Origin: Macrostomum lignano
Lineage: Eukaryota
Reading direction: 5' to 3'
Assembly (NCBI GenBank): GCA_002269645.1
Contig: NIVC01000568.1
Location: 1 to 64,000, forward strand
Length of the DNA: 64,000 bases
A model generated the notes under the pieces. That model was given only the letters and a program-made list of their open reading frames with translations, had not been told where the DNA came from and did not search any database. Of the stretch, positions 5,196-63,436 are shown piece after piece; positions within the stretch are counted from its first letter, which is position 1, and each line of letters begins with the position of its first letter. The position numbers and the translations under genes are program-made.

Positions 5196-5271
5196 CTAGG
5201 GGAGAGAAATTTTGATGAAAATAAAAGTAGCATTTGATCCCTGAGTTTAGAAAGCGAGCGAATTTTCTCAC

Positions 5272-6114
5272 CTCTTCGTGACCTTCCCTGGCAGCCACGT
5301 GCAGCGCCGTGTAGTTGTCCTTGCAGGTGGCGTCCGGACTGGCGCCAGACTGAAGCAGCAGCGCCACGATCTCCGCGTTGCCAGCCGGCTGGCTACATGC
5401 AGCGGCGTCTGGTTATCCTTAGCCCGAGCGTCCGGCTGGGCGCCGCAGCGCAGAAGCGCACGTGACGCTTCCAGCTGACCGCTGCGCACGGACAGATGAA
5501 GCGGCGTCTCCGTCCGCACGGTGAGGCTGTTTACGTTCGCTCCGTGCTGCAGCAGAAGCAACGCGACGCTGTTGTGCCCCATGAAGGCGGCCACGTGCAG
5601 CGGCGTCAGCCCGGACTCCGTAGCCGCCTCTACAGCGCAGCCGAACTGCAGCAGCAGCTCGATGACCGGATGCGATTCTTCTTGCACGCTATGTGCAGCG
5701 GCGTGAAGCCGTTCAGAGCCCGGGCGTTGACCATGCAGCGGTGGTCCAGCAGCAGCTTGGCCACGCGGGTGTAGCCGCAGTGGGCGGCAACATGCAGCGG
5801 CGTCAGCAGGTCGATGGTGGTGTCGTCTAAGTTGGCTCCCCGGGTCAGCAGCAGCCGGGCGCAGTCAACGTGGTCGCCCTGAGTGGCCATGTGCAGAGGG
5901 CTCAGGCCGCTGCGCGACTTCAGCCCGAAGCTGGCGTTACTGCCCAGCAGCTGGTCGACCACGGCGTACTGGCCGGAGCGGGATGCGCAGTGCAGCGGCG
6001 TGAGGCCGTCCGGGTTTTGCAGTCGACCTCGGCGCCGTGTTCCAGCAGCTTCTGCACCACCGGAAGCATGCCCCACTTGGCGGCCACGTGCAGCGGTGTG
6101 ATGTTGTTCCGAGC
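5272..6114 (-). CDS. ank: Ankyrin exon 4, ANK repeats 8-16, with three 1-nt frameshifts
   Basis: Consecutive TPLH repeats continue across three frames, with shifts near 6010, 5667 and 5381; aag acceptor and GTGAGA donor. Confidence 0.9.
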
Positions 6115-6924
6115 CTTGGAGTTCGAGCAATTGAATGCTTGTTTAGCCATATAAATAAAATCTGCATTCGTTGTGCGCGACACCTTCGGTCACTTTGTGC
6201 CCACAGTTCTCACACTCTCCCGGGTGTACAGAGTTCCTTTGCTGTCTAGTTTTCAGGAAAGTACACAATAGCCGTGCCTCAAGGAGTCGGCCCTCGTAGT
6301 CGTTAAATGAGCTAGAAAAACCCAATGTTACTACTCTAAAAGTTTGGACTTTCTATTGTGTGGACACACCTGGAATCAATCACGAAGTCCCGTGCTGTGA
6401 AGCTAGGAACTAGCAGTCAAGAGTCAAAAGTTTATAAAACTAATGTAAGTAGAATCCGTCTCTTTTATATATGATCGGACTCCTTGCCCTCGAACTTCAA
6501 GAGTCTTGAAGTGTCTTTCTAATAACACGGGCCCGGGTCCTCCTCCACACGTTAACGATGCGAAGCAGCTCTGCCCACAAGCTTGGCCTAAGTCAACGCT
6601 TAGTAGCTCCTAGCACAGCCATCACTAAGCTAACATTTGACAAGATGGATCGGATGCGCAAGCTACAGATTTGTTCATGTAATCGCGCCAACATTGGCGT
6701 CATGAAGAAGCCTCAAGTTTGCAGCAAGGCCGAACACTGCCAACCTGAAGGCTAGTGCCTACTGCAACAGAATGAAGCCAATTCTTGCGTGATCAAACTG
6801 CTCGCAACAGATACAAGTGACGTGATTGAGCCTTCAACCTCAATGCACCTGAGCATATTAGGTTTGGAAAACCTCAGAACTCATGCCACTTGAGGCTGTC
6901 AGTCAGATCAACTTCCTCGCTCAC

Positions 6925-7500
6925 CTGGAAATTCACATCGGCGCCCTTCTCGATGAGCAGAGCAGCCACGCCCAGCGAACCGTAGTGCGCGGCTATGTGC
7001 AGCGCGGTGAAGCCGCTGCCAGCCTGATGGTTCGGGTTGCTGTCCGACGTCAGAAGCAGCGTTGCTGAACGGACGTCGTCCTTCTTGGCAGCCACGTGTA
7101 GAGCCGGCATGCGAGAGCGGCCGCGACTGTCGTTCTCCAACAGGATGGCGACGACCTTCTCGTGGCCCTGCTGCAGCGCCACAGCCAGTGGCGTGAATCC
7201 GTCGGTGGTGGCCAGAGTTTGCGAGGCGCCCGAGGCCAGGAGAAACTTCACAACGTCGACGTGGTTCTCCTGGGAGGCCATGTACAGCGGAGTGAATCCG
7301 TTCTGCGACTGGCAGTTCACCTTGGCGTCCTTTTCGATTAGCAGTTTCACCACCTCGAGCTGGCCGGCCAGGCAGGCGATGTGCAGCGCCGTGTTGCCCT
7401 TCTTAGTGCACGCATCCGGGTCGGCATTGCGCATCAGCAGCTCGCGCACGACAGCGGTGTGACCCTCCTTCGAGGCCAGGTGTAGCGCATTGAGACCGTT
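6925..7500 (-). CDS. ank: Ankyrin exon 3, ANK repeats 2-7
   Basis: [56 protein letters not shown] are diagnostic of true ankyrins; 576 nt between cag and GTGAGC. Confidence 0.95.
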
Positions 7501-17424: not shown

Positions 17425-18145
17425 ACTATTCCAAGGGCGTCGCCATGGATTTTATGGTTGGGGGGACAAAGCCAAGAATTCTACATGTAACACATGTACA
17501 TTATTTTGAGAATCAGTGTTGTCAGCGCTCATATTGGTGCCGCAGGCACTCATTTTAGCGCTGCAGGCACTCATTTTAGCGCTGCAGGCACTCATTTTAG
17601 CGCCATAGGCACTCATTTTAGCGCCGCAGGCACTCATTTTAGCGCCGCAGGCACTCATTTTAGCGCTGCAGGCACTCATTTTAGCGCCATAGGCACTCAT
17701 TTTAGCGCCACAGGCACTCATTTTAGCGCCACAGGCACTCATTTTAGCGCCACAGGCACTCATTTTAGCGCCGCAGGCACTCATTTTAGCGCCATAGGCA
17801 CTCATTTTACCGCCACAGGCACTCATTTTAGCGCCACAGGCACTCATTTTAGCGCCACAGGCACTCATTTTAGCGCCACATGCACTCATTTTGGCGCCGC
17901 AGGCACTCATTTTAGCGCCGCAGGCACTCATTTTAGCGCCGCAGGCACTCATTTTAGCGCCGCAGGCACTCATTTTAGCGCCTCAGGCATTCATTTTAGC
18001 GCTGCAGGCACTCATTTTAGCGCCGCAGGCACTCATTTTAGCGCTGCAGGCACTCATTTTAGCGCCGCAGGCACTCATTTTAGCGCTGCAGGCACTCATT
18101 TTAGCGCCACAGGTACTCATTTTAGCGCCACAGGCACTCATTTTT
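17425..18145 (-). mobile_element. Dispersed element with a 21-bp satellite core, about 30 units
   Basis: gcaggcactcattttagcgcc array; flank is the reverse complement of 2360-2475. Confidence 0.75.
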
Positions 18146-22716: not shown

Positions 22717-22860
22717 CTGCGAATCAAATTGCTGACTTGATTACTCTAGGAAATTAGGAATGAAGCGTCAGTGTCTTCTCATCAATAAGGTAGATCAAGC
22801 GCGGGTAGATCAAGAGGAGAGGTTTGATCAAATCTGAAGCCAAAAAAGCGCTTCACTTAC

Positions 22861-24149
22861 CCGAAAATTCCTCAGAGAGCCGAAGTATATTGCAATAAAG
22901 GCCAGCCACACGATGCAGGTGGAGTACATGGTGAATGCTATGTACTTCGCCTCGTTGAAGTTCTCCGGAATGTTTCTAGTCTTGAATGCGTACAGGGTGC
23001 ACAGGACAATAAGAATCATGTTGTACAGCAGAGAGACAACGATAGCCACGTCATCAACAGCGCAGCGCAGCACTTTGTGATCTCTGTCGGGATAGTCAAA
23101 CTTGGTTTTCGGCAGGTCCATGCCTAGCCAAGTCATGTCGCCGATGACTTGCACAGACACAAGGCAGCAGCAGAGCACCAACTGGGATTTTGGGCTGGTG
23201 TACGAGGGCTTCTTCATCAGCGATTTTATTCCACGATTGAAAATTCGACTGAGCCGATTGGTCTTGGTGAAGATTGCTGAGTAGATTATGCTCAAACTGA
23301 GACCGTTGAAGATTCTAAAAAACCCGCAGGTGACAGGACTTGGCGGCGCCAGCATGATGAAGGTCATGCAGTAAGACAGCAGGATTCCAGCCAGCATCAC
23401 GTAGCAGAGCTCTCGTCCGGAGGCTCGAATAAGCGGTGTCTGATTGTACTTCACAAATACGAATAGCACGAAAGCGGTGCAGAGCAGGCCCAGGAAGCTG
23501 AAGGACATCGGCAACAGGGCCCATACACTGTTCAGTTGGATTGTCTCAATTGGCAGTGGCTCGCATGAGTTGAAGTACCGGTTCGGAATGCTTCCAAGTG
23601 GACAGTCGGAGCAGGTGGTGGAGTTGAGAACGATTTGGTACTTGCTATCGCAACTGACGCACTCCCAGCAGCAAGCGGCAGCCTCTTTGTTGGGCGCCAC
23701 CGTTCTCTTGCCATAATCGCAAGGCTCCGAGCAGACGGAGCGAGGTGTCTCTTCACCCGGCGTGCCCCAGCGCAAGCTGCTATTGTCCAACTCCAAACGG
23801 TCGTCCCCCCAGGTGCCGATTTTGTAGTAGCGGAAGGACTGATTTCCGCCCGACTCCGCAGAGTTGACTCGCTGCAGCTGGAAGATCTCGTAGAGGGACT
23901 CGCGATCGCCGTGACGATTGAAGCGCACAAGGTTGCCGGAGGTTCCATTGAAGCTAATGTTGCGGATTAGATCGCGAAGCTGAGTGCCATTCAGCTTGCG
24001 ATCGCCCGTCACCTTTCGACAGGCAGATGGGGGTCCATTGCCGCAGAGCAGCCGGTGCAGGGAGTGGGCCATGGCGTAGACTGCGTCCACCACCATGGGC
24101 ACGAGACCCTCCTGCTCGTACTTGGCGGTTACGCCGATTCTCTCGTCTC
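22861..24149 (-). CDS. mGluR: mGluR exon 5 (end of flytrap, cysteine-rich domain, TM1-TM6)
   Basis: VDAVYAMAH, SVCSEPC, CCWEC, RASGRELCY, KTNR, NFNEAKYIAFTMYSTCIVWLAF; 1289 nt, phase 1-0. Confidence 0.97.
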
Positions 24150-28614: not shown

Positions 28615-29350
<736 letters not shown>

Positions 29351-30969
29351 ATGCCAGTGCATGCAGCATTAGACCCACCTCATAGGTAAGTGAAACTTCT
29401 CAACCAATCAATTCCTTCTGTCTTAGTGGTGCTTTCATTGATTTCTGTCCCGAATGAGCGGGAGGGTTGACCGAAGGCTCTTTGATGTCATGCGGGCCAC
29501 CAATCCCGTGATTTAATGGCCTGGTTGCGGTAATTTATTCCCTTCAACCGCTTGTCCTGCCGGTGACTTTGCTCTTCGAATTGATTTCGACATTCTGAGT
29601 TGGTCTGCGCCCAGATCATTGGCTACTGCCATCATATCCCGCATATGATTGAGTGCGGCACCGAGGGGAATGGAATAGCAACTGATAATCAATACTTGGC
29701 GACCCAACCCGACCCTGCGGGCGCCGTGCCTCTCCTTGCAATTGAATTCGCAGATTGAGCTTGGCAACAAAGGTGGTCAATAAAAGTGCATATTGAGTAC
29801 AGCTATTGCAATAGAAGGCTGTTGAGCAGATGGCGGGGGGATAAATATAAGAGGGGAGAAATTGAGGCAGAAAGAAAATCTCTAAGGCAATTATACTGGA
29901 CTAGTGAAGAATGGGATACTGTAGGCTTTATTCTACGTACTAAGGAACCTCTGGCTGGCTCGAATTTAACTTACAGCAGTTATCTGGCGTCCATCTATTG
30001 GTCTTTAAATCGAAACAGCATCCTCACAAAGCTTACAAAATCGAGGAAAGGAGAAGAAAAAGAAATTTCTGAACGGCGGCGCTTGCTGGCTGTTGCTAGA
30101 AGACAACAATAAGGTACTTAATGCATGCACAAAGGCCTTGAATCTCTTTCTCCGCTGCTGTGTTGCGGATGCTGAAAAACGCTAAAGTAGTTGGAGGCAG
30201 ATAGAGAGACAGGGAGGGAGGGCGGAAAGAATCCCACACTTTAACGATCAGGAATTCTAGATAGAGAAACAGACTAAGAAAGAGAAGCCACCGCGAGAGA
30301 AGAGAGACGGGGTAGGAGGGAGAGATAGCCATAGCGATGCAACAATGCAGCACAATGGCAGCGAAACTTAGCTGGCTTGGAGAGTATGGAGAGAGCGCGG
30401 CTTGGAGAGGCTGCTGAGGAGGTGGGAGATTCCGCGGCCACGGCATCCGCGGGTCCGGAGAGCGGTATTTGCTGAGCGTGATGTGCTTAGAAAAAATTGT
30501 ATCCATTGTAAAAAACCTGACTCATTTGAGACTGCCTAAAGTTCAACGGGCTCTTCTTCGGAGACGAGGAATGCCTTACCGACAGAGGCCGACGATCTGC
30601 AAGTTCGGGCTGGGTAATCAACTTGTTCCCAAACATATCTGGAAAAGCTTGATTCGAAGGCAGGGTTGCGTGAGCAACGCATTCGGCGACGTCGTCCCAT
30701 AACCAGTGCTGGGGCAATTCTGCTCATTGCGCAGACTCCTGAGCACATGCAAGTTCGTCAATACTGTACTCAGGCGCGCACTCATGCACACGCTCACACA
30801 GGGTGTACAGCGGCCCTGACTTTCTAATCGTCAGGCATGTACACTCTCTGAGCCTTGGGGCACGTGAGGATGAACCCCACGAACACCACGAACCTCAAAT
30901 TAATGTGGCGCTCGAATATCGAATCGAAACCCAAGAGTCGTGGCGTTAGGGTCAGACACGTGGGCTCAC

Positions 30970-31443
30970 CTTGAATAGTCGCAAAATATTGGCAATCATG
31001 ATGCTGACTGAGGAATCGGCGGCGCCGATCACTCCAGCGACTGGCTTGCGCGACTTTCGCTTAGGCGTCCTGGCGGCAGGGTCGGGGCACTGGTACTCGT
31101 ACGACGCGTCTAGCGTGCTCAAATGATCCGTGACGAAGTCCATGCTCTGTTCAAGCGCGTAGGTGTCCTTGGAGCAGGTGTCAAGCAGCTTGGCCCCCAG
31201 CTTCAGATGCGGCAGGAGACTGGGATCTGCGTTGACGCGATTCAATGCATAGACCATGGCCTCCAGGCGCTGGATGCCTCGGTTCTCGCTGATCTTGCCG
31301 CACCTGCTGGTCTCGGCCGGGTCCTTCTCGTGGATGGGGAACAGGCCGCCAAGAATCAGTTCGCCGGGAAGTGACATCTTTTTGCAGAGGCCGATCGGTG
31401 AGGCAGCCGAAACAAGTAGCAGGGTCAGGATTAGCGCTGCCAT
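30970..31443 (-). CDS. mGluR: mGluR-like class C GPCR exon 1 (signal peptide and start of Venus flytrap domain)
   Basis: MAALILTLLLVSAASP signal peptide; LGGLFPIH, RGIQRLEAM, LDTCS, SVSIMIANILRLFK motifs; GTGAGC donor, phase 0. Confidence 0.95.
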
Positions 31444-31719
31444 GTCCAAAGCACACTGAGCTGTGCCGATGTTTGTGAGCAGTAACTATGCCAAGGGAGC
31501 TGTTCTTCACTTCGTTTCTGCGTTTTCTCTGGCTTCTATCGGAATTTTTAGCCCCATGGGAAGAGAATTGGGATGATATATTGAATGGGAGCCCAGCTTG
31601 GTCTCCATTGGTGGGAGTCCTGCCCAATCCAGCGCAGAAAGACGCGCACCAGAAGACAGAATGGCGCAGTTACCATAGCAAAAGCAAATCCAGGCCAATC
31701 TCAACCAGCCGATCACATA

Positions 31720-36049: not shown

Positions 36050-36600
36050 ATAGGCGTAGGAAGGGGGGGACAGTGGGGCCATGGCCCCCCCACTTTTTAA
36101 AATAGTGAGGCCAGTAATGGTATCTAGCCCCCACATTTTAAATGTAAAATGTAGACTTTTTGCTTATTTTTGGTTTTTGCTGCTTTGCATGAATGCATTT
36201 TGCTGCAGGCCGACAAAAATAGCGGCAAAATGAGTGCCTGCGACGCTAAAATGAGTACCTGCGGCGCCGAAATGAGTACCTGCGGCGCTAAAATGAGTGC
36301 CTGGGGCGCCAAAATGAGTACCTGTGGCGCTAAAATGAGTGCCTGCGGCGCCAAAATGAGTACCTTCGGCGCTAAAATGAGTGCCTGTGGCGCCAAAATG
36401 AGTGCCTGTCGCGCCAAAATGAGTGCCTGCAGCGCTAAAGTGAGTGCCTGCGGCGCTTTATAAAATGAGTGCTGACAAAATGGATTCTGAAAGTAATCGG
36501 TACATGAAAATGTGCATTTTCCATATAAAAAATCTAAACTCGACAGGGGCGTGTGCCCTGTGCGCCCCCCCCCTAAATCACCACTGAACCTGCCCCCCCC
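36050..36600 (+). mobile_element. Dispersed non-autonomous element with a 21-bp satellite core, about 11 units
   Basis: gcctgcggcgctaaaatgagt units followed by gctgacaa..gattct..gtacatg, shared with 2300-2475 and 17425-18145. Confidence 0.65.
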
Positions 36601-43456: not shown

Positions 43457-45079
43457 TCAGACGTCTGTCTCAAAGCATGCTGTTGTGTTGCCCCTGCTGG
43501 AAGAATTCTGTTGCGCCTGCAGCTTGCCTGCGTGGTTCTGTTTCGTGCTTTGATTACTCGCCTGCTGCTGCGGCTGATCCTGCATGAGGAAGTGTCCCTC
43601 CGTGGCCAGGTCCACCTCGGAGGCCTCCGACACTCGGCTGGCAGACACCAGCGAGTTCTTCTTACCGCCGTCTCTGTAGGAGGGGCAGGACTGCACGTGC
43701 ACGTAGGTCTGTTTGTCCTCCGACTCCGTCTCCCGGTGATAGAAGTAGTTGAAGTTGGACACGATGACGGGTACGGGCAGGGCAATCGTCAGGACGCCTG
43801 CGATGGCGCACAAGGAGCCTACTAGCTTGCCCCAGACGGTTACGGGGCGCATGTCGCCGTAGCCTACTGTCGTCATGGTTACTACTGCCCACCAGAATGC
43901 CGACGGGATGGAGTCAAAATGCGACTTCGTAGAGTCCGCTTCGGCGAAGTAGACGGCTGAGGAGAACAGAATCACGCTGATGAATAAGAAGAACACCAGG
44001 AGGCCCAGCTCTCGAACGGAAGCTTTAAGCGTCTGGCCGAGAATCTGCAGGCCTTTGAAGTGTCGGCTGAGCTTGAAGATGCGAAAAACGCGGACAAGCC
44101 GAATCACCCGGAGGATGGCCAGCGACATTGCTTGGTTACTGCGGCTGTCATCGGCAATCACCGTGCCCAGCGTGATGAAGTAGGGAATGATGGCTACGAT
44201 ATCGATGGAGTTCATTATGTTCTTAAAAAAGCCAAGTTTCTCCGGTGAGGACGCGAACCGAACCATCAGCTCGAAGGTGAACCATACTATGCAGATGGTC
44301 TCTATGATGAAGAAGGGCTCGCCAAACTGCGGTATGTCGTCCTCCTCGATTACCTGGCCATACGTGGTATTACCAAAACTACTGTTGACAACCTTGTAGC
44401 GTCGGAAGTGAGGCAGCGTTTCCACGCAGAAAATTACTATGCTGAGCAGGATGACGCACACTGAAATAATGGCAATAACACGGGCTGCCATGGAGCTCTC
44501 GGGGTATTCGAAAAGCAACCAAACCTTGCGTTGGAACTCGTTCTCGGGTAGTACCTTCACCTCCTCTTTAATAAAGCCTTCATCGTCGCGGTACTTTTCG
44601 ATGGCCTCTTCTCCAAGCTCGTAGAACCGAATCTCCTCCGAGAAAACGTCAATTGGAACGTTGACTGGCCTTCTTAGTCGCCCGCCGCTCTGATAAAAGT
44701 ACAGAATGGCGTCGAATGACGGCCGATTACGGTCGAAGAAGTATTCGTTGCGTAGAGGGTCGTAGTAACGATTGCGCTTCTGCGAGTTGCCCAGTAGAGT
44801 GTCCGGGAACTGATTGAGTGTCTTCAGCTGCGTTTCAAAGCGCAGCCCGCTGACATTGATGACCACACGCTCGCAGTCGTAGTCGAATGCCGAACGATTG
44901 TCCTCGCGGTCCAGCATCAGTTGTTGTTGATGCTGCTGGCTCGTGTCCTCCGTCATTTTTGGAAAAGACCTGGAATAGGGCACATGCAGGTGGGCTAGTT
45001 CGCTGACTCTGCCACGCTGGCCCATGTAGCTGCCGGGGCCACCGTTCCCCTGCTCGATGCCTGCCATGGCCACCTCCAT
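43457..45079 (-). CDS. Shaker/KCNA: Shaker-family voltage-gated K+ channel (Kv1), intronless core, 540 aa
   Basis: GCCGCCATGG start; T1 domain [16 protein letters not shown]; S4 [17 protein letters not shown]; pore TMTTVGYGD; PVPVIVSNF; C-terminal ETDV. Confidence 0.98.
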
Positions 45080-46489
45080 GGCGGCGGGCCGGCTCACACA
45101 GAGAGTGGAGTGAACAAGTGAGGCAGGGAGAACAGGTCAGACAGGGAAGTCGCCCTGCATTAGACTCCCTCGGCCCCTTGAACCAAGGGAAGCTGGAAGG
45201 TATCTGAGGATTTCGTCTTGACTGTCGGGCGGCTCAGATTGAGAAGTCTCTTGTTCTGACAAAGACGGCTGGGGCAACAGCTGGCGAGGCCAGGCTATGA
45301 TAGCTGTCTCTCGTCTCCCTCTTTTTCCTGTCTCTATTTCGCAGAAATTCTTTATTACTTCATCCTCCCTCTCCTGCTCCCTCACTCTTGTACGAGGCTG
45401 GCTGGATTTGATGCACGGGACTGGGCGCAGGGGTGGGCGCGGTTTATGGCACTCGGATGGTTGCTGATGGCTGCTGCAGAGTGAGGGAGGGAAGCAGGGA
45501 GTGAGCGATGAGGGAATAGATCCTGAGGTGGAGCTTTTGTGGGATAAGACCTGTACAGTTAGGCGCAGCTCTGTGATGGCTTTGGGGAGGGAAAGCCAAA
45601 ATGAGAAGCGCGACTGTTTGATGAAGAGAAAGAAAGAGAGAGGAGCGAGAGAGGAAGAGGAACGGTGGCTAGGATAGGAATTTGTCAGAGCGAATTCTCA
45701 GGCCCATCAAACTACTGAGTTTGGATCTTCCAAACAACTGAGCATTTACGGGGGGAGCCCTAGCCAATGGTAGAGGACCCTTGCGCCCGTCGATTCAGTG
45801 CAGCCACCACCTATTCTTGCTCTCAACACCATCGCTCTCTCTGCATCGTCTCCCAATTCCTGTTTCAGATCCTTCCTGTCCAACCCGGGCTGCCCCCCTC
45901 CCCGAGACCGTGGCGAGAAAGTACATAGCTAATTCCTGAATTTGGCGCGTTAAAGAATCCAATGCAATCCAATGCACCCCCTCCATCCACATTCTCATAG
46001 GCAATCTCTCCCACTCTCCCTCTCTTTGGATGCAGTAAAGGCCGTGAGCGGGTGAAGGAGTCACTCTGGGATCACAATGGAATAGCTAGGGTAATGGGAT
46101 TGCTGCCTCCCTCCCTGCCTCCATTTCCCAACCTTTCCCATTCACTGGAACTGGGCGATGAGCCATGCTGCAGCGGTTGCATTTGGGGTAGCTACGAGCG
46201 TATGCGCAGGGGGCGGAGGTGGTGGGTTTAGACTGCAGCTGAAACACACTGCGTGAGTCAACAGGCTACATTCTAAAAGAGCTTGGCTCTGAATCCATTC
46301 TCATCCGCCAATATTTTTCATTTGTTCCTCTCTGCTCAGCAAACAACTCTAGGCACGGCTGCTCTCAAATATGTGTATAGTTGCTCCTGTCGTCTTGTTA
46401 AATGTACATCAAAACCTAGCACCAAATTTACAAAGCTGTATTGGCTAGAATTCCTATTCAAAGGCAGGATTATTATTTTAACAGTCACA

Positions 46490-48561: not shown

Positions 48562-49867
48562 GGCAGCCAGAGCTGTCAGGGAGTCATGGCATTTTGTATA
48601 TTGTTTCCGATCAACGAGTCGTGAGTGGGCAAGTAGTTCAAACTTAGGCCATTGGGAGTCGCTGTCGCTCTCTCTGTCTATCGATATGTTTGTCTAAGTT
48701 TTCTCGGCTTGTTACATTTTTCTTTCTGGCAGAAGAGGCGGTTTATAGTGAGGAGGTGGGAATGGAAATTATTGCTTACCCCTACCAGTGCGGGGGCCGC
48801 TCTCAGAGGGGAGCTTAGCGGCGCAGTTGGACTACCGGCACCTTGCCGATCCCCTCTGTGCAGAATATCCTCGCAAAGGCACACGTGTGCTCCTACATAT
48901 TCCCCACTTGCTGCATACAGCCACAGTCAGGGTGTGTTAGTTGAGAAAATTTTCGGGTGCGCAAGGGTCCCATTGTGCGCATTACATTGGCGCAATTGCA
49001 TTTACTGCGCGAATTATTTCACTCGGGCCAGTGAAGTCTGGGGCGCAGCTTGTACGAGCGAAGGAGGAAACCAGAAAATCAGCAAAGCCGCTGCGACACC
49101 CCGCGCTCTGCCAAGCCCGAAAGCTGCTCACCCACCCACTCACGGACGCGACTGTCGAGCCAGCCAGAAAGGGAATCAAGAGGGGAGAAGGCCATGCCGG
49201 GGAGTACGCGAAACTGTAGCAGCTACAGAGGGGTCAGAGAGCCAATGCTCAATACTTAATACTCGTAGAAGCGGCTTCCCCGGCACTGAAAGCAAAGCAA
49301 AGCGTTGTTGCAATCAGAACGGGGAATGTGTTTGACCCCGCCGCTTTTCCGGTGGGGTGGGGCAAGGGCTGCGGATTAATTCTCCACCACCGGGGCAGTT
49401 TGGCATGCGAGCTCATTTCTGACGACTTTAATTTCAATCTTCTTCAGCTCTTCTTGACTACAATCTACGCGAGTAGATTATGTGCCCGAGTATCAGCCAA
49501 CTCTAAGTATTTCTACATTTAATGATTCCATTGTAAACAACTCAAAGCGTAAACAAGGCTTTATAAACAATAGAACTGTCCTAGCAATGGAATCGCTCCA
49601 GCGCAGGATCAGTTGAAAATTTAATTTATTTTTCTCCTCTAAATTAAAAATTTGTTTATACCAGTATTGAAAATCACCAGTTATTCTACTCAGTAAGTAG
49701 GCCCTATGTGAATTTTTTTTTATCTTTCTACGAGCGTATCCAGCCTCAGAAGACAAATTGTATTTCAAAGTCCCCATAACTAAATCGTGTGTGATAGGAA
49801 TTGTAAAACTTGAAAGACTTCAAAGGATTGAAAAGTTTGTGTGGCAGACTATTATAACTGCCCTAAT

Positions 49868-50073
49868 GGCCAGATGTGCAACCGACAGCTCAGCCGCAGC
49901 TATTGCGCGGCGCATCTGAAGGCTGCGTACGGCTGTTCAGTCCAAGGACTGGGGGGTCGCCACACACACCATCAATTACCCCAGCTAATGCTGGCACCCA
50001 TTTTACAGCTGGTTGAACTGAAGCAATGCAGAGTTAAGTGTCTTGCTCAAGGACACAAATTATTCTAGTGGGA
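49868..50073 (-). mobile_element. Second, 5'-truncated copy of the CORE-type SINE
   Basis: About 200 nt nearly identical to 57425-57640, including CORE; ends before the B box. Confidence 0.8.
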
Positions 50074-50239
50074 TGTGATGTCTAGGGGCGATGTGATTGA
50101 GACGTCAAGTCATTGTTGTTTGAACTTGTGGGTTCAGTCGATTCAACTTCCTAGTTACATGTTAGTTAAAGTTTAGAAAAGATCTGCGGTCTGGCAAACT
50201 CTGACAGCCGAACGGGTAACAGATGCCCGGCTGTCCTAC

Positions 50240-54084: not shown

Positions 54085-55545
54085 AAGCCTGGTTCATCCG
54101 CTTTTATCTCAGTCAATTCTGGTCCATCCGCTTTTATCTCAGTCAATTCTGGTTCATCCGCTTTTATCTCAGTCAATTCTGGTCCATCCGCTTTTATCTC
54201 AGTCAATTCTGGTCCATCCGCTTTTATCTCAGTCAGTCAGTTCTGGTTCATCCGCTTTTATCTCAGTCAGTTCTGGTCCATCCGCTTTTATCTCAGTCAG
54301 TTCTGGTTCATCCGCTTTTATCTCAGTCAATTCTGGTTCATCCGCTTTTATCTCAGTCAGTTCTGGTTCATCCGCTTTTATCTCAGTCAGTTCTGGTTCA
54401 TCCGCTTTTATCTCAGTCAATTCTGGTCCATCCGCTTTTATCTCAGTCAATTCTGGTTCATCCGCTTTTATCTCAGTCAGTCAGTTCTGGTTCATCCGCT
54501 TTTATCTCAGTCAGTTCTGGTCCATCCGCTTTTATCTCAGTCAGTTCTGGTTCATCCGCTTTTATCTCAGTCAATTCTGGTTCATCCGCTTTTATCTCAG
54601 TCAGTTCTGGTTCATCCGCTTTTATCTCAGTCAGTTCTGGTTCATCCGCTTTTATCTCAGTCAGTCAGTTCTGGTTCATCCGCTTTTATCTCAGTCAGTT
54701 CTGGTCCATCCGCTTTTATCTCAGTCAGTTCTGGTTCATCCGCTTTTATCTCAGTCAATTCTGGTTCATCCGCTTTTATCTCAGTCAGTTCTGGTTCATC
54801 CGCTTTTATCTCAGTCAGTTCTGGTTCATCCGCTTTTATCTCAGTCAATTCTGGTCCATCCGCTTTTATCTCAGTCAATTCTGGTTCATCCGCTTTTATC
54901 TCAGTCAGTCAGTTCTGGTTCATCCGCTTTTATCTCAGTCAGTTCTGGTCCATCCGCTTTTATCTCAGTCAGTTCTGGTTCATCCGCTTTTATCTCAGTC
55001 AGTTCTGGTCCACCCGCTTTTATCTCAGTCAGTTCTGGTCCATCCGCTTTTATCTCAGTCAGTTCTGGTCCATCCGCTTTTATCTCAGTCAGTTCTGGTC
55101 CACCCGCTTTTATCTCAGTCAGTTCTGGTCCATCAGCTTTTATCTCAGTCAGTTCTGGTCCATCCGCTTTTATCTCAGTCAGTTCTGGTCCATCCGCTTT
55201 TATCTCAGTCAGTTCTGGTCCATCCGCTTTTATCTCAGTCAGTTCTGGTCCACCCGCTTTTATCTCAGTCAGTTCTGGTCCATCCGCTTTTATCTCAGTC
55301 AGTTCTGGTCCATCCGCTTTTATCTCAGTCAGTTCTGGTCCACCCGCTTTTATCTCAGTCAGTTCTGGTCCACCCGCTTTTATCTCAGTCAGTTCTGGTC
55401 CATCAGCTTTTATCTCAGTCAGTTCTGGTCCATCCGCTTTTATCTCAGTCAGTTCTGGTTCATCCGCTTTTATCTCAGTCAGTTCTGGTCCATCCGCTTT
55501 TATCTCAGTCAGTCAGTTCTGGTTCATCCGCTTTTATCTCAATCA
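54085..55545. repeat. 30-bp minisatellite (ttctggtccatccgcttttatctcagtcag)
   Basis: Direct tandem array with occasional tcag insertions. Confidence 0.95.
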
Positions 55546-57424
55546 GTCGTAAAGTTCGTATAAGTTAAAATTATGATAGTCCTTTTGACAATGCTATGAC
55601 AACCATACGATTTACAATTAGTGCACATGTACTTTCTGAACAATGGATCTTCAGTCAGGCAGCTTTAGTCTACAATTTACAGGCTTAGTGTAGGGAAGTT
55701 AGGCATTAACTTGGCCCTCCAAATTTATTTTTAGATAATTTCTCTTAATTAAACTGCGTCGAATCCGACCAAGTGGCTCCAGATCGCGACTAGACCTGCA
55801 AGTCCGCAATGCGGGACTGACTTCGGAATCAAAGCAACGACCGACCAGTGGGGTGGAGCGCTTTGCTTCGGTGAATAGGACGAGCGGCCGATTTCTATGA
55901 AAAAATGGGGGGGGGAATGGGAAGCGCGTCCTAACCGCTCCAAGTCTTGCCTTCGCCGACATGGACCGCCGGTGGGAGTCCTAGGTTAAGTGGAGAGAGA
56001 GAGAAAGATAGATGGACACAGAGTGCTGAGAGCGCGGCTCACTGGGTCAACACAACTCCCCACATGAGAGAGAGAGAGATTAGCGGGCCTCTACTTTGTC
56101 CAGAGAGCTCCGCATCTGCATCGCAAACTTTTTTCGGGGCAATCCCAGTTGGCGCCATAAGCACTGTGCGGAGTGCCGCGGCCCGGGCCCTATTATATTC
56201 AATCAGTCAGTCGCAAAAGAGCGCTGTGAAGGGCTGGGAGGATGGCGAGACACGAAAGCGAAGTCCTAGGGGAGTGGCGCAGAGACTGGATGCTTTTTGT
56301 TCAAAGGGAGCCGGGAGAAAAAAGTAGGCAGAGAGAATTATGAAGGGGAACTGACTGATCGTGGCCAGAGTTGAGGAACTTGCACTGCATCGGGGGGGGG
56401 GGGGCTGATGAAGAGAAACCGTCCTTCTGACTCCGGCCTGACGAAGGCTTCGGATTCACGCCTCCGTCTCTCTTTCCATCCCGCGGTAGGGAACCCTGTC
56501 TTTCACTCTAATTGCTTAGGTAAAGAAATTACGACCAGGCATAATAACGGAAGAAGAGCGACAGGGATAGTTCATCCCAGACAGACACGGATACCCGGCA
56601 TTTGTCGAGCTTCCCGAGAAAAGCCGAAAGTCCTATGCTGAAAGCATTACACTATTCTGTGTACGAGTCGTAGAATATTGCTTCGGGCTGGCTGGCCTGG
56701 AAGTAAAACGCCGAACTAAAGGTTTGACCAGGATGTCCCTGTGGTAGCAGCTGTCAGCTGAAGCCTGAAGCTGTTCATCTGGAAGCCAATAACTTTTCCC
56801 TTGTTAGAATTTTTTGAAGCTTCGAACACTTGGTGAAAGTTCTTGACTTCGCAGATGGTTGACATTTTTCGTTGGCTCTGGATTGCAGATGCATGCTTTT
56901 TTAAAGAGAACTTAAAAACAGCTGGGTTCAGAGCGCGTTGGTCTCTGAAGCTTTTGATTGCGTGAAAATTAAATCATGCGGTTCACTGAGAGATTTTAGA
57001 CTCCTGCGGCAATCTTCACCAAGTTTTATGGGAGCAGCGTGCCTCCACTATTTGATCTCTGATTAAGAAGTCCTTGAGTGTTGAGAACTTGAGCATTCGG
57101 CCGCTGATTTGAGTCGGGAGTACCAGGAAGTCCACTGGCTCTCCGGTTCACTGAACGCACAGACGCACAGGCCTAAGTGTGCTTGCGACGCCAACTGTAA
57201 AGTCTGAAGATGGTGGTTTTAGCTGAGCGAAAAAACGTGGTGCGATTTATATATTTGAGGTTGTAAAAGTGAATGCTACGACGATGTACATGAATTATTG
57301 ACCGCTTGCAACCCAAGATGTACATTTATGTGGGAACATAACTCCCCCAGTTAGAGCAAATCAATAATCTTGTTGCAAGGCAATAACTAATTAATTGACT
57401 ACATTGCACCTGCCAAGTCCAATA

Positions 57425-60093
57425 GGGCCAGGTGTGCAACCGACAGCTCAGCCGCAGCCATTGCGCGGCGCATCTGAAGGCTGCGTACGGCTGTTCAGTC
57501 CAAGGACTAGGGGGGGGGGGGTCGCCACACACCCTCAATTGCCCCAGCTAATGAGCTGGAACCCATTTTATACCTGGTTGAACTGAAGCAATGCAGAGTT
57601 AAGTGTCTTGCTCAAGGACACAAATTGTTCCCGTGGGATCACGAATCGAACCCCCGACCTTTCAGTCGTGAGAGTCCGACGCTCTAATCACTGGAGCTCT
57701 AATCACTGGAATTCTAATTACTGGAGCTCAAATCACTGGAGCTCTAATCACTGGAATTCTAATTACTGGAGCTCAAATCACTGGAGCTCTAATCACTGGA
57801 GCTCTAATCACTGGAGCTCTAATCACTGGAGCTCTAATCACTGGAGCTCTAATCACTAAAGCTCTAATCACTGGAGCTCTAATCACTGGAGCTCTAATCA
57901 CTGGAGCTCTAATCACTAAAGCTCTAATCACTGGAGCTCTAATCACTGGAGCTCTAATCACTAAAGCTCTAATCACTGGAGCTCTAATCACTGGAGCTCT
58001 AATCACTGGAACTCTAATCACTGGAGCTCTAATCACTGGAGCTCTAATCACTAAAGCTCTAATCACTGGAGCTCTAATCACTAAAGCTCTAATCACTGGA
58101 GCTCTAATCACTGGAGCTCTAATCACTGGAACTCTAATCACTGGAGCTCTAATCACTGGAACTCTAATCACTGGAGCTCTAATCACTGGAACTCTAATCA
58201 CTGGAGCTCTAATCACTAAAGCTCTAATCACTGGAGCTCTAATCACTAAAGCTCTAATCACTGGAGCTCTAATCACTGGAGCTCTAATCACTGGAGCTCT
58301 AATCACTGGAGCTCTAATCAATGGAGCTCTAATCAATGGAACTCTAATCACTGGAGCTCTAATCACTAAAGCTCTAATCACTGGAGCTCTAATCACTAAA
58401 GCTCTAATCACTGGAGCTCTAATCACTGGAGCTCTAATCACTAAAGCTCTAATCACTGGAGCTCTAATCACTGGAGCTCTAATCACTGGAACTCTAATCA
58501 CTGGAGCTCTAATCACTGGAGCTCTAATCACTGGAACTCTAATCACTGGAGCTCTAATCACTGGAACTCTAATCACTGGAGCTCTAATCACTGGAACTCT
58601 AATCACTGGAGCTCTAATCACTAAAGCTCTAATCACTGGAGCTCTAATCACTAAAGCTCTAATCACTGGAGCTCTAATCACTGGAGCTCTAATCACTGGA
58701 GCTCTAATCACTGGAGCTCTAATCAATGGAGCTCTAATCAATGGAACTCTAATCACTGGAGCTCTAATCACTAAAGCTCTAATCACTGGAGCTCTAATCA
58801 CTAAAGCTCTAATCACTGGAGCTCTAATCACTGGAGCTCTAATCACTGGAGCTCTAATCACTGGAGCTCTAATCACTGGAGCTCTAATCACTGGAACTCT
58901 AATCACTGGAGCTCTAATCACTGGAATTCTAATTACTGGAGCTCAAATCACTGGAGCTCTAATCACTGGAGCTCTAATCACTGGAGCTCTAATCACTGGA
59001 GCTCTAATCACTGGAGCTCTAATCACTAAAGCTCTAATCACTGGAGCTCTAATCACTGGAGCTCTAATCACTGGAGCTCTAATCACTGGAGCTCTAATCA
59101 CTGGAGCTCTAATCACTAAAGCTCTAATCACTGGAGCTCTAATCACTGGAGCTCTAATCACTAAAGCTCTAATCACTGGAGCTCTAATCACTGGAGCTCT
59201 AATCACTGGAACTCTAATCACTGGAGCTCTAATCACTGGAGCTCTAATCACTAAAGCTCTAATCACTGGAGCTCTAATCACTAAAGCTCTAATCACTGGA
59301 GCTCTAATCACTGGAGCTCTAATCACTGGAACTCTAATCACTGGAGCTCTAATCACTGGAACTCTAATCACTGGAGCTCTAATCACTGGAGCTCCAGTCA
59401 CTGGAGCTCTAATCACTAAAGCTCTAATCACTGGAGCTCTAATCACTAAAGCTCTAATCACTGGAGCTCTAATCACTGGAGCTCTAATCAATGGAGCTCT
59501 AATCACTGGAGCTCTAATCAATGGAGCTCTAATCAATGGAACTCTAATCACTGGAGCTCTAATCACTAAAGCTCTAATCACTGGAGCTCTAATCACTAAA
59601 GCTCTAATCACTGGAGCTCTAATCACTGGAGCTCTAATCACTGGAGCTCTAATCACTGGAACTCTAATCACTGGAGCTCTAATCACTGGAACTCTAATCA
59701 CTGGAGCTCTAATCACTAAAGCTCTAATCACTGGAGCTCTAATCACTAAAGCTCTAATCACTGGAGCTCTAATCACTGGAGCTCTAATCACTGGAGCTCT
59801 AATCACTGGAACTCTAATCACTGGAGCTCTAATCACTAAAGCTCTAATCACTGGAGCTCTAATCACTGGAGCTCTAATCACTAAAGCTCTAATCACTGGA
59901 GCTCTAATCACTAAAGCTCTAATCACTGGAGCTCTAATCACTGGAGCTCTAATCACTGGAGCTCTAATCACTGGAGCTCTAATCAATGGAGCTCTAATCA
60001 ATGGAGCTCTAATCCCTGGAGCTCTAATCACTGGAGCTCTAATCACTGGAGCTCCAGTCACTGGAGCTCTAATCACTGGAGCGCCCGACGCTC
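57425..60093 (-). mobile_element. tRNA-derived CORE-type SINE with an internally expanded A-box/D-arm array
   Basis: Minus strand reads gctccagtgattagagcg (A-box-like), ggttcgattc (B box, 57643-57652), then tgtgtccttgagcaagacacttaac...taaaatggg, which resembles the MIR CORE. Confidence 0.8.
57681..60082. repeat. 15-bp satellite (gagctctaatcactg), about 160 units
   Basis: Exact 15-nt periodicity with a few recurring variants (ctaaa, ggaact, caatg). Confidence 0.97.
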
Positions 60094-61024
60094 GTGTAGG
60101 CTGAAGCGGATGCAGCCGCCTGAACTGATTGACTTCCGCAATTGTCCCGTTCTGTCGGATGGAGACAAAATGGTCTTTAAAATCGTTATAGTTTAGAGTA
60201 AACCCTACTTCTAGTAGTTGGTTAAGTAAAAGAATGGAATATTAGCTATATTATGGATACTTTCTGTGTTTCCAGTAGCATTCTGTGTCCGCTAATATCT
60301 ACCTTAGCGAATATCTGTCCATAATTTATGCATTCATTCACCTTCAATAATACCAGCTACAACCGTGTCCAGCTTTCAGATTTACTTCTACCCCACAGCT
60401 CCCGGATAGTGCAAAGGGCAGCAAAGGTATATTCTAATTGCTGCTGACGTCACTTACAACCTTCGTCCCTTTTTATTGAATGAATCACTGCAGTTTGCAA
60501 GACCGTCGTGCTTTTAATAATTCTACGATTGAATAGCCAAAGTTGCTCGTATTGAACAAAGTCGAAATTTATGTTCATATCGATTTTACTTTTATTATAT
60601 TCTTTTCCTTGACAATTCAGAAAAAAGGTTTTACATAAAATAATACATGCATTTGGTTTGCACAAGCAGAGTGCAATTCTACCTGGCATAATAATGTATA
60701 AATCAGTGCATATGAATTACGATTATGTCAGTTACTCAAAGATTTCTGCTTGTCTCTGTTTACTATTTAATCAATAATAAGCAGTTCTAAAGCTAAAAGA
60801 CATACCGTAATACCGCAAAAAGTATGAGAATATAGCTCATATCAGGCCAACAATAGCCGGGATGATACGCGCAGATAAACGTCCAGAACCCAACGCATAG
60901 ATGAGGAGCAGAAGGTAGCATGTAAAAAAGTGGCGCTCGCAAACTTGGAATACAGCACGATACGGTTAAAACAGAGACATGGTCAACAACGGATATCAGC
61001 TTGAGTTTTGAACTGAGTTAAAAA

Positions 61025-61645
<621 letters not shown>

Positions 61646-62619
61646 TTATATGGTCATCGAATAGTAGCCATATTAGTTTGCAATGTGAAACAGGTTAAGC
61701 ATACCTTTCTAATGCCCATAAGACTTTTCATAAGAGAGAAACCTTGTATATCCAAATTTGGAATGTGAAGAGAGAAAGAGAAAAAAACTGATAAATAGGC
61801 AAGATGTTGTAAACAGCTGAGCATATTGTCTGCTCAGCAACGGGAATGAGATGGAGAGCAAGAGGCCCCAGTGTTAGTTAGCAAAGCTAGGCAGAAGATA
61901 ACAAAAGCAGTTTTTTGTTTCAACAGCCCCTCTGCTTGTGTGATAAAAAGAGAATCATTTTTGCAGCACATTCTATCTAGATAACTATTGCATATCATTA
62001 CAAATTCAAATAGAACCCCAAACTCAGTCATTGCAGACGGATAGCTCATAATTATACAGGAAATCGTCAGCGCAAATTACCTCTCCCCCCACCACCACCG
62101 AATCGTTTGCATTCCCCTATCGTTCTTCTGAACTGCAGTTGCCTGTGCTGTTCTCTAGCTAAAAAATACAACTTTTTTAGACCAGGCCAAGCCCATGCAG
62201 TGTAGCAGTTTCAGGAAATTGATTCCGCGCGTGCTTCGGCTCTCGCAGACGAAGCTTTTAAATCCACTGGTCTGTCTTTCTGTCCCTGGCACTGTCTTCT
62301 ATTGACACAGAATGGGATCGACCAGCTCTCATCCAGCTATCTTATACTGTGCCAGCCGTTCTCTCCACTTTTTAATAGCTCGATTGCTAAAATGTCAAGC
62401 TAGCAACGGCTGCGCTCCGACTGGAATCTAAGAGCTAGGCTGCAACACAGTTCGGTACAGGTTAAGCCGCTATGGGGTGGGTTAGCGGCTGTCAGCTGTT
62501 TACCTCAGTATAGGCTCAGTATAGGTATAGGACCGACCCATGCAGGAAATGCTAAAGCAGATGAAAATGCATATTAAAAAAACTATGCCTGGAATATCAA
62601 TAATTGTTAAGTATCTCAC

Positions 62620-63115
62620 TGTGCAGCTCTTCTTTAACTTCGGTTAGCTCTGCGACAACTTTTGATGCCAAACAGTCCGCTTCGTCCATCGGCTCAGCTT
62701 TCTCTTGCAGCATTGGCTCTTGGTGCTGCTGTTGCTGTTGCTGTTGCTGCTGCTGTTGTTGCTGCTGCTGCTGTTGTTGAATAGTCTGCTGCTGCAGCCG
62801 CGGTGAAAGCAGGAAACAATAAGTCGGTTCATCCTCGAGCTTAGAAGTGGTAAAAAAGGCGCCAGGAGCGCCGCCGCCGAGCCTAGCGGCCTGGTGCGGC
62901 CCGCCCGGCGTATGCAGCGCGACCGGAGTCTTCAACTCGTCATCTGCGGCGAAAAAGTGCTGAGTTGTGGCTGGCGTCAGGCCGCAGGTTTTCGGCGTAT
63001 CGCCGCTGTGGAAGGTGTCGAAGACGCGAGCGCTTTCGTCAAGCGACTGTTGAGTCAGGCGTTCCAAATGTTCATGGCTGAAGCTGAATGCGCAGGACTG
63101 GATGTTCTCCATCAT
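62620..63115 (-). CDS. egr: EGR exon 1 (MMENIQSC..., includes a Q18 tract)
   Basis: gcgATGATGG start; donor a/GTGAGA in phase 1 joins exon 2 in frame, giving 369 aa. Confidence 0.75.
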
Positions 63116-63436
63116 CGCCAAAGGCGTGAGTGCTGCTAACCAGGTTGCCAGCTTGGTTCCTGTTGTGGTTAAACTGTGCTTTTGTATCGGCTGTAGCTCT
63201 CAGATCCTGACAGCGGAAGGGGAGGAGAGACGGCAGACTTGAATAGCCGTGGAATATGAGGACAATTGTGCCGGTAACCTTTAATATTGACAGTGCCGAA
63301 GAAGGATGCAGCCAGGTAGCCTATTTTCTCGCGCTTTTTTTCAACGTCTCAGTTGATACCGCGGGTTAAGTTATAACAGGCAGAAAAGCCACGGCTTGTG
63401 CGTGTCTTTAAGGTTTTATGAATGAATATCTGAATT

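Follow-up and report, generated by a model that had tools for sequence, protein, structure and literature searches.

Minisatellites and satellites derived from SINEs are already described, with Alu, B1, the squamate sSats and Xenopus laevis satellite 1 as examples. Xenopus satellite 1 and the salamander Hy/Pol III satellite have both been described with Pol III promoter elements. These two, the latter European, are tandem repeats from SINE-like elements (PMC6947457, Table 1), as is the array that we describe here in a 64-kb stretch of Macrostomum lignano DNA (hereafter the window). They are genome-wide, however, and built of long units that each hold a whole promoter, whereas the M. lignano array has a 15-bp unit, a degenerate A box at best, a single B box and one locus. 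In the squamate sSats, as in our array, the unit comes from within a tRNA-derived SINE, and the terminal units continue into the remaining SINE (Vassetzky et al. 2023, PMC10702118). Some sSat units include parts of the head or promoter (a snake unit spans box B), and a locus can hold hundreds of monomers (320 in one case) with alternating locus-specific subvariants (PMC10702118). Their units measure 67–215 nt, against 15 nt confined to the D-arm in M. lignano, and they are spread over many loci in each genome and favor subtelomeric ones, whereas we saw our array at one locus; the hosts are squamates in one case and a flatworm in the other.

Short SINE motifs have likewise expanded in place in the mouse B1-derived (GGCAGA)n VNTR (Bois et al. 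1998) and in Alu-derived minisatellites (Jurka & Gentles 2006; Ahmed & Liang 2012, PMC3389668), which a review lists (PMC6947457). The route proposed there is slippage or unequal exchange, then further expansion. Unlike the M. lignano unit, the Alu and B1 motifs are 7SL-derived and lie outside the D-arm/A-box of a tRNA-type head. The Haber-Louis model, as reviewed there, invokes flanking direct repeats of 5–10 bp for these minisatellites, against only 2 bp at our array. PcH-Sat, a lophotrochozoan tandem repeat from the limpet Patella caerulea, has been proposed to come from a Nin-SINE with a conserved central domain (PMC11121367); it is an isolated, abundant satellite, whereas the M. lignano array still has its parent SINE intact around it.

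Array anatomy and unit composition

TRF reported a minus-strand tandem array at 57681–60082 with a period of 15, 160.1 copies, 91% matches, 0% indels and a score of 4104. A pattern search of the window for the 15-mer TCCAGTGATTAGAGC agreed: with up to two mismatches allowed, it gave 157 minus-strand matches, every one of them in phase, compared with a mean of 0.13 in shuffles, and the rest of the window outside the array held no match. Together with a unit census, these searches resolve the array (57681–60082, minus strand) into 160 units of 15 bp in the register GCTCCAGTGATTAGA plus a terminal GC, and the original prediction of about 160 copies at this place and on this strand was correct. 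The minus-strand order, which we observe directly, is cacGAGCGTCGGGC-GCTCCAGTGATTAGA(x160)-GC-GTCGGACTCTCACGACTGAAAGGTCGGGGGTTCGATTC, followed by a MIR/CORE-like domain; a 30-mer of array sequence reads TCCAGTGATTAGAGCTCCAGTGATTAGAGC. Both flanks are unique and join the array in phase, with the D-arm unit running on into the SINE head on either side. One unit plus GC equals the ancestral 17-nt D-arm, GCTC-CAGTGATTA-GAGC, so that 159 units (2385 bp) are extra.

The 160 units compare with the at least four middle monomers by which a SINE-derived satellite is recognized (PMC10702118). With its 15-bp unit, at the one euchromatic locus where we saw it, the array is better called a minisatellite than, as had been predicted, a satellite in the usual sense. 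The palindrome GAGCTC, said to mark the overlap of neighboring units, is present in 110 of the 159 junctions; the other 49 read GAGCTT (28), GAGTTC (18) or GAATTC (3). The census counted 96 consensus units and nine variant types. All 100 differences from the consensus fall into 10 substitution types, seven of them transitions, and because there are only 10 such types, the array would be much younger than the ∼10% divergence between SINE copies.

The tRNA-like SINE around the array

The SINE is on the minus strand throughout. Its tRNA-like head begins with GAGCGTCGGGC (60083–60093), as placed from the sequence, from ARAGORN on the collapsed head, from the 9-mer positions and from colinear SINE heads. 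This 5' end contains the 5' strand of the acceptor stem, CGTCGGG, together with one copy, the upstream one, of a 9-bp repeat, GAGCGTCGG (60085–60093; 9-mer positions). On the other side of the array, the remaining head (57631–57680; sequence, ARAGORN and motif scans) consists of an anticodon-arm remnant, the T-arm and the acceptor 3' strand, and the motif scan located in it a B box, GGTTCGATTCG (57642–57652), that matches GGTTCGANNCC at 10 of 11 positions. The central conserved domain TGTGTCCTTGAGCAAGACACTTAAC...GTATAAAATGGG (57562–57622), CORE/MIR-like by metagenome SINE copies and MIR alignment, is followed by a 3' body (57397–57561) defined by blastn and by pairwise alignment of two copies in the window. 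Homology with the second copy stops at about 57397, and there is no A-rich or simple-repeat tail at the 3' end of the SINE.

When the array is collapsed to one unit, the head becomes a 75-nt tRNA-like cloverleaf, reported by ARAGORN at the 70% threshold only, with a D stem GCTC/GAGC, an acceptor stem CGTCGGG/TCCCACG paired at six of seven positions, and the 10/11 B box. ARAGORN found no tRNA in the native 64-kb window, and Rfam gave no tRNA match in the array-proximal interval 57350–57800; the head thus reads as tRNA-like but degenerate. Heads with a single D-arm are present in 14 SINE copies with the same central domain, and the collapsed head is colinear with these as well. Judging from the sequence, the array is seated exactly at the D-arm position of a tRNA-like SINE head; the ancestral head would have had a single D-arm, and one array locus was seen. 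The collapsed cloverleaf, the 14 colinear heads and the alignment to an uncurated MIR consensus support the prediction that the unit is the D-arm of a SINE head with a CORE behind it.

CORE-SINEs and MIR reportedly go back to Gilbert and Labuda in 1999. As in these elements and the mollusc CORE SINEs (PMC4758252), a tRNA-related head is followed in the M. lignano SINE by a central domain of ∼65 nt, although no target-site duplication was found here. The domain is ∼83% identical over ∼66 nt to tRNA-headed SINE copies at 34 metagenome loci; the scan used a CORE 22-mer and retrieved SINE families of other animals that have only the central domain in common. It aligns with the MIR CORE and with many invertebrate SINE domains, and through head and CORE the SINE reached a local score of 69 against an uncurated MIR consensus, compared with a shuffle maximum of 41. 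The CORE assignment was made with this consensus in place of a curated CORE model, and there is overlap among related central domains, Nin-DC for example (PMC4758252). A literature search with the CORE sequence string found no paper, and the family-specific 3' 24-mer had no match in viral and prokaryotic collections.

A second, 5'-truncated copy of the same family lies at 49858–50074 on the minus strand (blastn, alignment and nhmmer, E 2e-52) and is 90.3% identical to the first over 216 bp by blastn; its presence suggests that the SINE behaves as a dispersed retroposon. This copy has neither D-arm nor array because its 5' truncation falls just after the B box. Neither copy in the window has a target-site duplication of at least 8 bp. 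A 7-bp AGTCAAT match was considered as one and rejected because AGTC, common to the second copy, belongs to the element.

The 9-mer CCGACGCTC has two occurrences only in the 64 kb, at 57676 and 60085 (shuffle mean 0.25), and its downstream copy (57676–57684) overlaps the last four array bases. A 9-bp direct repeat around the array is improbable by chance, and we count it against our best explanation. It had been predicted to bracket the array, and its positions were given correctly; the duplicated unit is bounded instead by a microhomology of only 2 bp (GC) at the edges of the duplicated segment. The cloverleaf and the related heads rule out that the 9-bp repeat is an insertion scar, because removing the array with one repeat copy deletes a D-arm that is required there. 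A 24-bp periodicity is absent from the array.

Duplication history and folding potential

The block-duplication pattern can be read directly from the order of the units. A 23-unit block (345 bp) at 58493–58837 on the minus strand recurs exactly at 58088–58432, an offset of 27 units, and a 21-unit block (315 bp) at 59063–59377 recurs exactly at 57863–58177, an offset of 80 units (both from unit-order comparison on that strand). The longest repeated run, 23 units, compares with control maxima of 14 for shuffles, 17 for Markov-1 and 22 for Markov-2 sequences. Identity at lag 80 is 95.5% versus a mean of 92.6%, and the array divides into two colinear halves of ∼80 units in which 23 variant units are matched (out of 31 in the first half and 33 in the second). 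The halves are not identical, with unit insertions, deletions and substitutions between them. The unit order also has a 3-unit HIJ tandem. The 21-unit repeat at offset 80 would mark the doubling of a super-block of ∼1.2 kb, and the array appears to have grown by block duplication. Nested duplications at 27 and 80 units are consistent with unequal exchange or multi-unit slippage and not with single-unit rolling-circle copying.

The D-arm hairpin as DNA has a predicted energy of −1.3 kcal/mol, which 23 of 200 shuffles equalled. The array itself folds better than shuffles, both as DNA (z −4.4 and −3.7) and as RNA (z −7.3 and −7.0), so a structural contribution or an RNA-level role may exist. Two neighboring arrays lack a fold signal (z +1.0 and −0.1) and have nevertheless expanded to 0.6–1.5 kb. 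Overall, the predicted hairpin potential of the array is modest. The nested block offsets, the marginal hairpin and the expansion of arrays with no fold signal all speak against the mechanism originally proposed, hairpin-driven slippage or rolling-circle amplification. For the further proposal of a poly-hairpin RNA source, the RNA fold prediction is favorable (z −7.3), and such a source is a predicted one only. Weak miRNA-like Rfam matches inside the array (E 0.1 or worse) were dismissed as products of its self-complementarity.

Genomic setting and probable origin of the array

The array lies between the EGR and Kv1 genes. The last coding exon of the EGR/Krox-like zinc-finger gene (61025–61639, minus strand; ORF list, EGR matches and Pfam zf-C2H2) is oriented like the SINE and has its stop codon ∼930 bp upstream of the SINE head, and a signal scan placed candidate poly(A) signals at 60771, 60596, 60518 and 60477. 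Tandem repeats are abundant in this background. By our own sum, the window has 19 separate arrays that make up 16.3% of its sequence. P0125 leads to a paralogous 25-kb M. lignano locus (L037), where 20 arrays make up 46% (again our sum) and both the SINE and the 15-mer are absent. For the M. lignano genome, the published share of simple and tandem repeats is 15% (PMC5730564). Two loci in the window hold arrays of one 21-bp family and have ∼35 bp of flank in common, and therefore dispersed arrays exist in the genome.

We consider it probable that the minisatellite is neutral and specific to this locus, and that it originated within a single copy of a tRNA-derived, CORE/MIR-like SINE of M. lignano. 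We infer the following order of events, its slippage and exchange mechanisms, and its neutrality. The SINE would have inserted by retroposition downstream of EGR, ∼0.9 kb past the stop codon. The 15-bp D-arm stretch, with the 2-bp GC microhomology at its edges, would have been duplicated once by replication slippage, and further rounds of out-of-register exchange or of slippage by several units at a time, among them the recent doubling of a ∼1.2-kb block, would have brought it to 160 units (2.4 kb). Slippage followed by exchange is an established model for SINE-derived minisatellites (PMC6947457). The D-stem would give rise to the junction palindrome GAGCTC and so to some self-complementarity, which may have aided mispairing, while the main driver would be the general tendency of this genome to expand short tandem motifs. 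The array can be explained with no function, and we saw no sign of one.

TFIIIC binds type-2 promoters chiefly via the B box, which is also the motif of extra-TFIIIC sites. The array had been predicted to hold ∼160 A-box-like motifs served by one B box, which could make it a multi-start Pol III unit or a TFIIIC insulator between EGR and Kv1. A good B box (10/11) does stand 35 nt past the last unit (our count from the sequence), the array does lie between two genes, and the SINE strand has no run of four or more Ts between 60170 and 57268, so that Pol III could read through array and body to the first possible stops 3' of the head (57230–57268, minus strand, with TTTT at 57268 and TTTTTT at 57235; motif scan). 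The unit, however, matches the A-box consensus TRGCNNAGTGG poorly, with four mismatches ungapped or two to three with a 1-nt insertion, and a B-box scan of the window returned the SINE-strand match at 57652 and an unrelated one at 380 but none within the array. What the array multiplies is a weak A element, not the B box, and it holds none of the B-box motifs of an ETC-like insulator. The A–B distance grows by 15 nt with every unit, and by our count no more than the last three to five come within ∼100 nt of the B box and thus within a normal distance; the last unit alone stands at 35 nt, where a functional type-2 promoter array would need a working A–B distance of ∼30–60 nt. Transitions that look unselected affect 49 of the 159 junctions, and arrays of unrelated units are found everywhere in the genome. 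A functional element of this kind is highly improbable, and neither the 160 A-box-like motifs nor the promoter and insulator roles find support. A scan for bacterial promoters and terminators is irrelevant to an animal genome and was uninformative.

Other accounts accept the array but change its history. Its length and its 1.2-kb halves could have been inflated or mis-ordered in assembly: exact internal duplicates of 315 bp and 345 bp and colinear halves are structures that assemblers can create, and repeats and extra chromosomes are reported to make M. lignano hard to assemble (PMC5730564). We regard this as unlikely, given zero indels over 2.4 kb, halves that differ by unit insertions, deletions and substitutions, and unique flanks that both meet the array in phase. 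It is very unlikely that a SINE subfamily carries the array, or a short precursor, and brought it in by retroposition, in which case many heads would hold similar arrays, much as non-autonomous Helentron-type elements of oysters carry tandem repeats. Dispersed arrays borne by TEs are known (PMC7492417, and the review PMC6947457), and the 21-bp family at two window loci with its common flank is of a kind with them; but neither the 64-kb window nor the 25-kb M. lignano locus yielded a second array, there was no repeated D-arm in the head stretches read of metagenome SINE copies with a related domain, a 2.7-kb Pol III SINE transcript would be unusual, and the exact block duplicates point to recent growth in place. 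Amplification of the unit by rolling circle or as an extrachromosomal circle, followed by reintegration, would suit a long array in perfect phase with no indels, and circles of multi-unit blocks could yield a higher-order periodicity. The nested duplications (27 and 80 units, and the 3-unit HIJ tandem) show no single repeating template, though, and the ancestral flanks are intact, in phase and free of a junction scar, which makes this route extremely improbable.

The array is a real and neat SINE-derived minisatellite, probably neutral, at the one locus seen, and it illustrates cleanly, but in no unusual way, how a mobile element can seed a tandem repeat; it opens no new question. There is only a slim chance that it is more than debris, in that the D-arm minisatellite might recur or spread with the SINE family as a retroposon-borne satellite seed, a minus-strand transcript (EGR read-through or Pol III) might fold into a long imperfect duplex that feeds a small-RNA or editing pathway, or the array might form a chromatin boundary beside an immediate-early gene. 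Its importance would be greater only if it recurred in many SINE heads, or were transcribed or bound by protein. How a mobile element gives rise to a tandem repeat is unusually plain to see at this locus, with the parent SINE intact on both sides, a founding 17-nt segment that can be named to the base, and an order of unit variants that records the duplication history. It may serve as a teaching example, or as a VNTR marker beside EGR in a laboratory flatworm.

We also compared the array and its neighboring genes with public collections. The array dimer is absent from viral and prokaryotic collections, and the open-frame translation (PVIRA)n had no candidate among 5.8 billion proteins. A 17-mer gave two viral matches, each single, which we take as chance. 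The search with the EGR exon returned matches at the zinc-finger level only and no ortholog, and an exact-protein look-up of Kv1 and P0121 in public assemblies gave no record. Finally, a full-length comparison of the window's Kv1 ORF with the M. lignano protein A0A1I8JLB7 gave 97% identity.

The array and its host SINE

A tandem array of about 160 copies of a 15-mer had been noted in a SINE head on the minus strand, and this was borne out by the sequence itself, by TRF, and by a pattern search. On the minus strand of 57200..60600, unique sequence leads to ...CACGAGCGTCGGGC directly before the array, which comprises 160 in-phase copies of GCTCCAGTGATTAGA and a closing GC, followed by GTCGGACTCTCACGACTGAAAGGTCGGGGGTTCGATTCGTGATCCCACGG and then TGTGTCCTTGAGCAAGACACTTAAC...GTATAAAATGGG. 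TRF reported one array at 57681..60082 (period 15, 160.1 copies, 91% matches, 0% indels, score 4104). Allowing at most two mismatches, we recovered 157 matches to the 15-mer, all on the minus strand and in phase, with none elsewhere in the window (shuffles gave 0.13 matches). There were 96 consensus units and 64 units of nine variant types; just ten types of substitution, of which seven are transitions, gave rise to all 100 differences from the consensus. Neighboring units had been described as overlapping at GAGCTC, which is kept at 110 of 159 junctions but not at the other 49.

Cut to one 15-bp unit, the head (hereafter the collapsed head) forms a 75-nt cloverleaf, recognized by ARAGORN only at a permissive 70% threshold. 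In this fold, six of seven acceptor-stem positions pair (CGTCGGG/TCCCACG), GCTC and GAGC form a D stem around the loop CAGTGATTA, and TTCGATT makes up the T loop; the sequence of the B box, GGTTCGATTCG, agrees with the consensus at 10 of 11 positions. ARAGORN found no tRNA in the native window, nor did Rfam in the array-proximal 57350..57800. The ∼65 nt after the head are ∼83% identical to tRNA-headed SINE copies of other animals in 34 metagenome contigs. Fourteen of those heads are colinear with the collapsed head, each with one D-arm (the GCTC-loop-GAGC hairpin) flanked by a GTCGTGG-type 5' strand and GAGCACCGGACTC. Matches from the metagenome scan, which used the conserved central domain as query, belong to other SINE families. 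Against the MIR consensus, head and central domain scored 69 (shuffle maximum 41), a lead and not a curated test. The family has another member at 49858..50074 (minus strand); at 90% identity to the first, it has lost its 5' end up to a point immediately past the B box, and homology between the two copies stops near 57397. No target-site duplication was detected for either copy, and the SINE has no tail repeat. The host is well supported as a CORE-type tRNA-derived SINE, with not every defining feature proven.

The two copies lie ∼7.5 kb apart in the same orientation. The 34 metagenome loci (L003..L036; contigs JACSEG01..., MDSQ01..., Ga0100406, Ga0314706) are filed as metagenome, are evidently animal DNA, and are rich in tRNA-headed SINEs that have the central domain GTCCTTGAGCAAGACACTTAAC...CCAGGGGTAAAATGGGTACC in common and fall into several distinct head and tail families. 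Neither the array dimer nor a SINE-family-specific 24-mer occurred in the viral and prokaryotic collections, and the translated array had no relative among called proteins.

Origin and growth of the array

We asked how a single D-arm became 160. Hairpin-driven expansion, as originally proposed, has the self-complementarity it calls for: A 150-nt piece of the array folded as DNA better than shuffles (z of −4.4 and −3.7 on the two strands) and much more strongly as RNA (−7.3 and −7.0), with a predicted RNA fold in the form of a long imperfect duplex containing G-U pairs. A 21-mer with two GAGCTC junctions reached −3.9 kcal/mol as against only −1.3 kcal/mol for the 17-nt D-arm as DNA, a value equalled by 23 of 200 shuffles. 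However, two neighboring control arrays without such folding (z of +1.0 and −0.1) expanded to 1.5 and 0.6 kb all the same; self-complementarity is real but unnecessary for explaining expansion in this genome. Rolling-circle copying of single units, the other proposed route, is contradicted by the order of the units, which, written as letters, is strongly non-random. An exact 23-unit run recurs at a distance of 27 units (58493..58837 and 58088..58432) and an exact 21-unit run at a distance of 80 units (59063..59377 and 57863..58177), with control maxima for the longest repeated run of 14 (shuffles), 17 (first-order Markov), and 22 (second-order Markov). Identity at lag 80 was 95.5% versus a mean of 92.6%, and the two halves are colinear: of the 31 variant units in the first half and the 33 in the second, 23 coincide in position. 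These repeated runs and colinear halves argue for growth by nested block duplications, the latest a putative doubling of ∼1.2 kb, with few mutations copied along with the blocks. Such a pattern points to unequal exchange or else to slippage by several units at once. The array is much younger than the ∼10% divergence of the two SINE copies. A slippage origin with growth by unequal exchange, and without function, is the most likely account, and we hold it with good confidence.

The 9-mer CCGACGCTC, described as bracketing the array, does occur exactly twice in the 64 kb, at 57676 and 60085, which is unlikely by chance, but it is not the boundary of the 15-bp unit, whose ends have only GC in common. 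Its copies start 24 nt apart in the collapsed head and correspond to GAG plus acceptor positions 1-6 and to the D-stem GAGC plus GTCGG; no 24-bp periodicity was found. We rejected an insertion scar, which would delete the D-arm needed by the cloverleaf and related heads. Just upstream of the head, at 60094..60116 (minus strand), GCTTCAGCCTACACGAGCGTCGG bears a loose likeness to the D-arm together with the flank on its 3' side, GCTCCAGTGATTAGAGCGTCGG (GCTTCAG-CCTACAC-GAGCGTCGG beside GCTCCAG-TGATTA-GAGCGTCGG). This likeness makes it possible that the stretch is the relic of an older ∼23-bp duplication in the head, which, if true, would account for the 9-bp repeat.

The array fits a known class. 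Tandem repeats built from SINE parts were described in 56 squamate genomes, some with units holding the head and box B, with hundreds of monomers per locus and alternating subvariants (PMC10702118). Minisatellites expanded from B1 and Alu, satellites of Xenopus and salamanders that descend from SINE-like elements, and a slippage-then-exchange model for such repeats have been reviewed (PMC6947457), and a further study traces a limpet satellite to a Nin-SINE (PMC11121367). Unlike these, the present array has a very short unit that covers the D-arm only, a parent SINE intact on both sides, and a flatworm host.

Promoter and insulator readings

About 160 A-box-like motifs serving one B box had been envisaged, but the unit is a poor A-box match (four mismatches to TRGCNNAGTGG ungapped, two to three with a 1-nt insertion) and few units are in range. 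The single B box lies 35 nt from the last unit, counted from the sequence, and the distance grows by 15 nt per unit, so only a handful stand at a normal working distance. For TFIIIC the B box is the main binding element, and B boxes make up the extra-TFIIIC sites; what is multiplied in the array is the A box, the weaker of the two promoter elements. On the SINE strand, T runs stay shorter than four from 60170 to 57268, making Pol III read-through possible; such a stretch would be permissive and does not show that transcription occurs. The EGR stop codon is followed by candidate poly(A) signals (60771, 60596, 60518, and 60477), which put the array probably a short way past the end of the EGR transcript, with the two sharing one orientation.

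Repeat and gene context

The M. lignano genome contains 15% simple and tandem repeats, which hampered its assembly (Wudarski et al. 2017, PMC5730564). The window agrees and has an extreme density of minisatellites, with 19 separate arrays of period 4–56 bp summing to 10.5 kb (16.3%), including a 30-bp × 48 array (54089..55547) and (TATC)n (738 bp, 28615..29352). An independent 25-kb M. lignano sample from the public assembly, around a paralogous Kv1 gene (L037, 1..25120) had 20 arrays summing to 46%, several spanning 1.2–1.6 kb. Of the 39 arrays in these two stretches, the 2.4-kb one has the greatest length, but it is an object of the same kind as the other 38. In a genome where such arrays form everywhere, it is a genuine, well-preserved minisatellite that derives from a SINE at a single locus.

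Many arrays at both loci yield long spurious ORFs. A 21-bp minisatellite, CTCATTTTAGCGCCGCAGGCA, occurs in opposite orientations at 17528..18144 and 36227..36457, with homology extending ∼35 bp beyond on one side (17493 vs. 36506), and 2306..2479 and 17429..17582 are 75% identical. These similarities suggest carriage of the array by a dispersed element.

The intronless Kv1 ORF (43457..45097, minus strand) is 97% identical over its full length to M. lignano UniRef A0A1I8JLB7, with one gene-model gap, one additional gap of a single residue, and one substitution; the window accordingly belongs to this free-living flatworm or to a very close relative. Within the Kv1 coding sequence, 43754..43867 (minus strand) matches the whole length of the Rfam model K_chan_RES, which describes the ADAR RNA-editing hairpin of Kv1, at 107.6 bits (gathering score 51), and the alignment has just two non-standard pairs; the match may reflect true conservation of the hairpin or only conserved pore/S6 codons. 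The EGR exon had no ortholog in the protein collection. Further minus-strand context (4391..7449, 22828..24102, 30952..31449, and 62597..63121) comprises ankyrin-repeat, class C GPCR, and polyglutamine-rich ORFs. The ankyrin-repeat exons are GC-rich (about 0.6), the class C GPCR (7tm_3, NCD3G, ANF_receptor) is spread over at least two exons, and the polyglutamine-rich ORF, which precedes the zinc-finger exon of EGR, may be the first exon of that gene.
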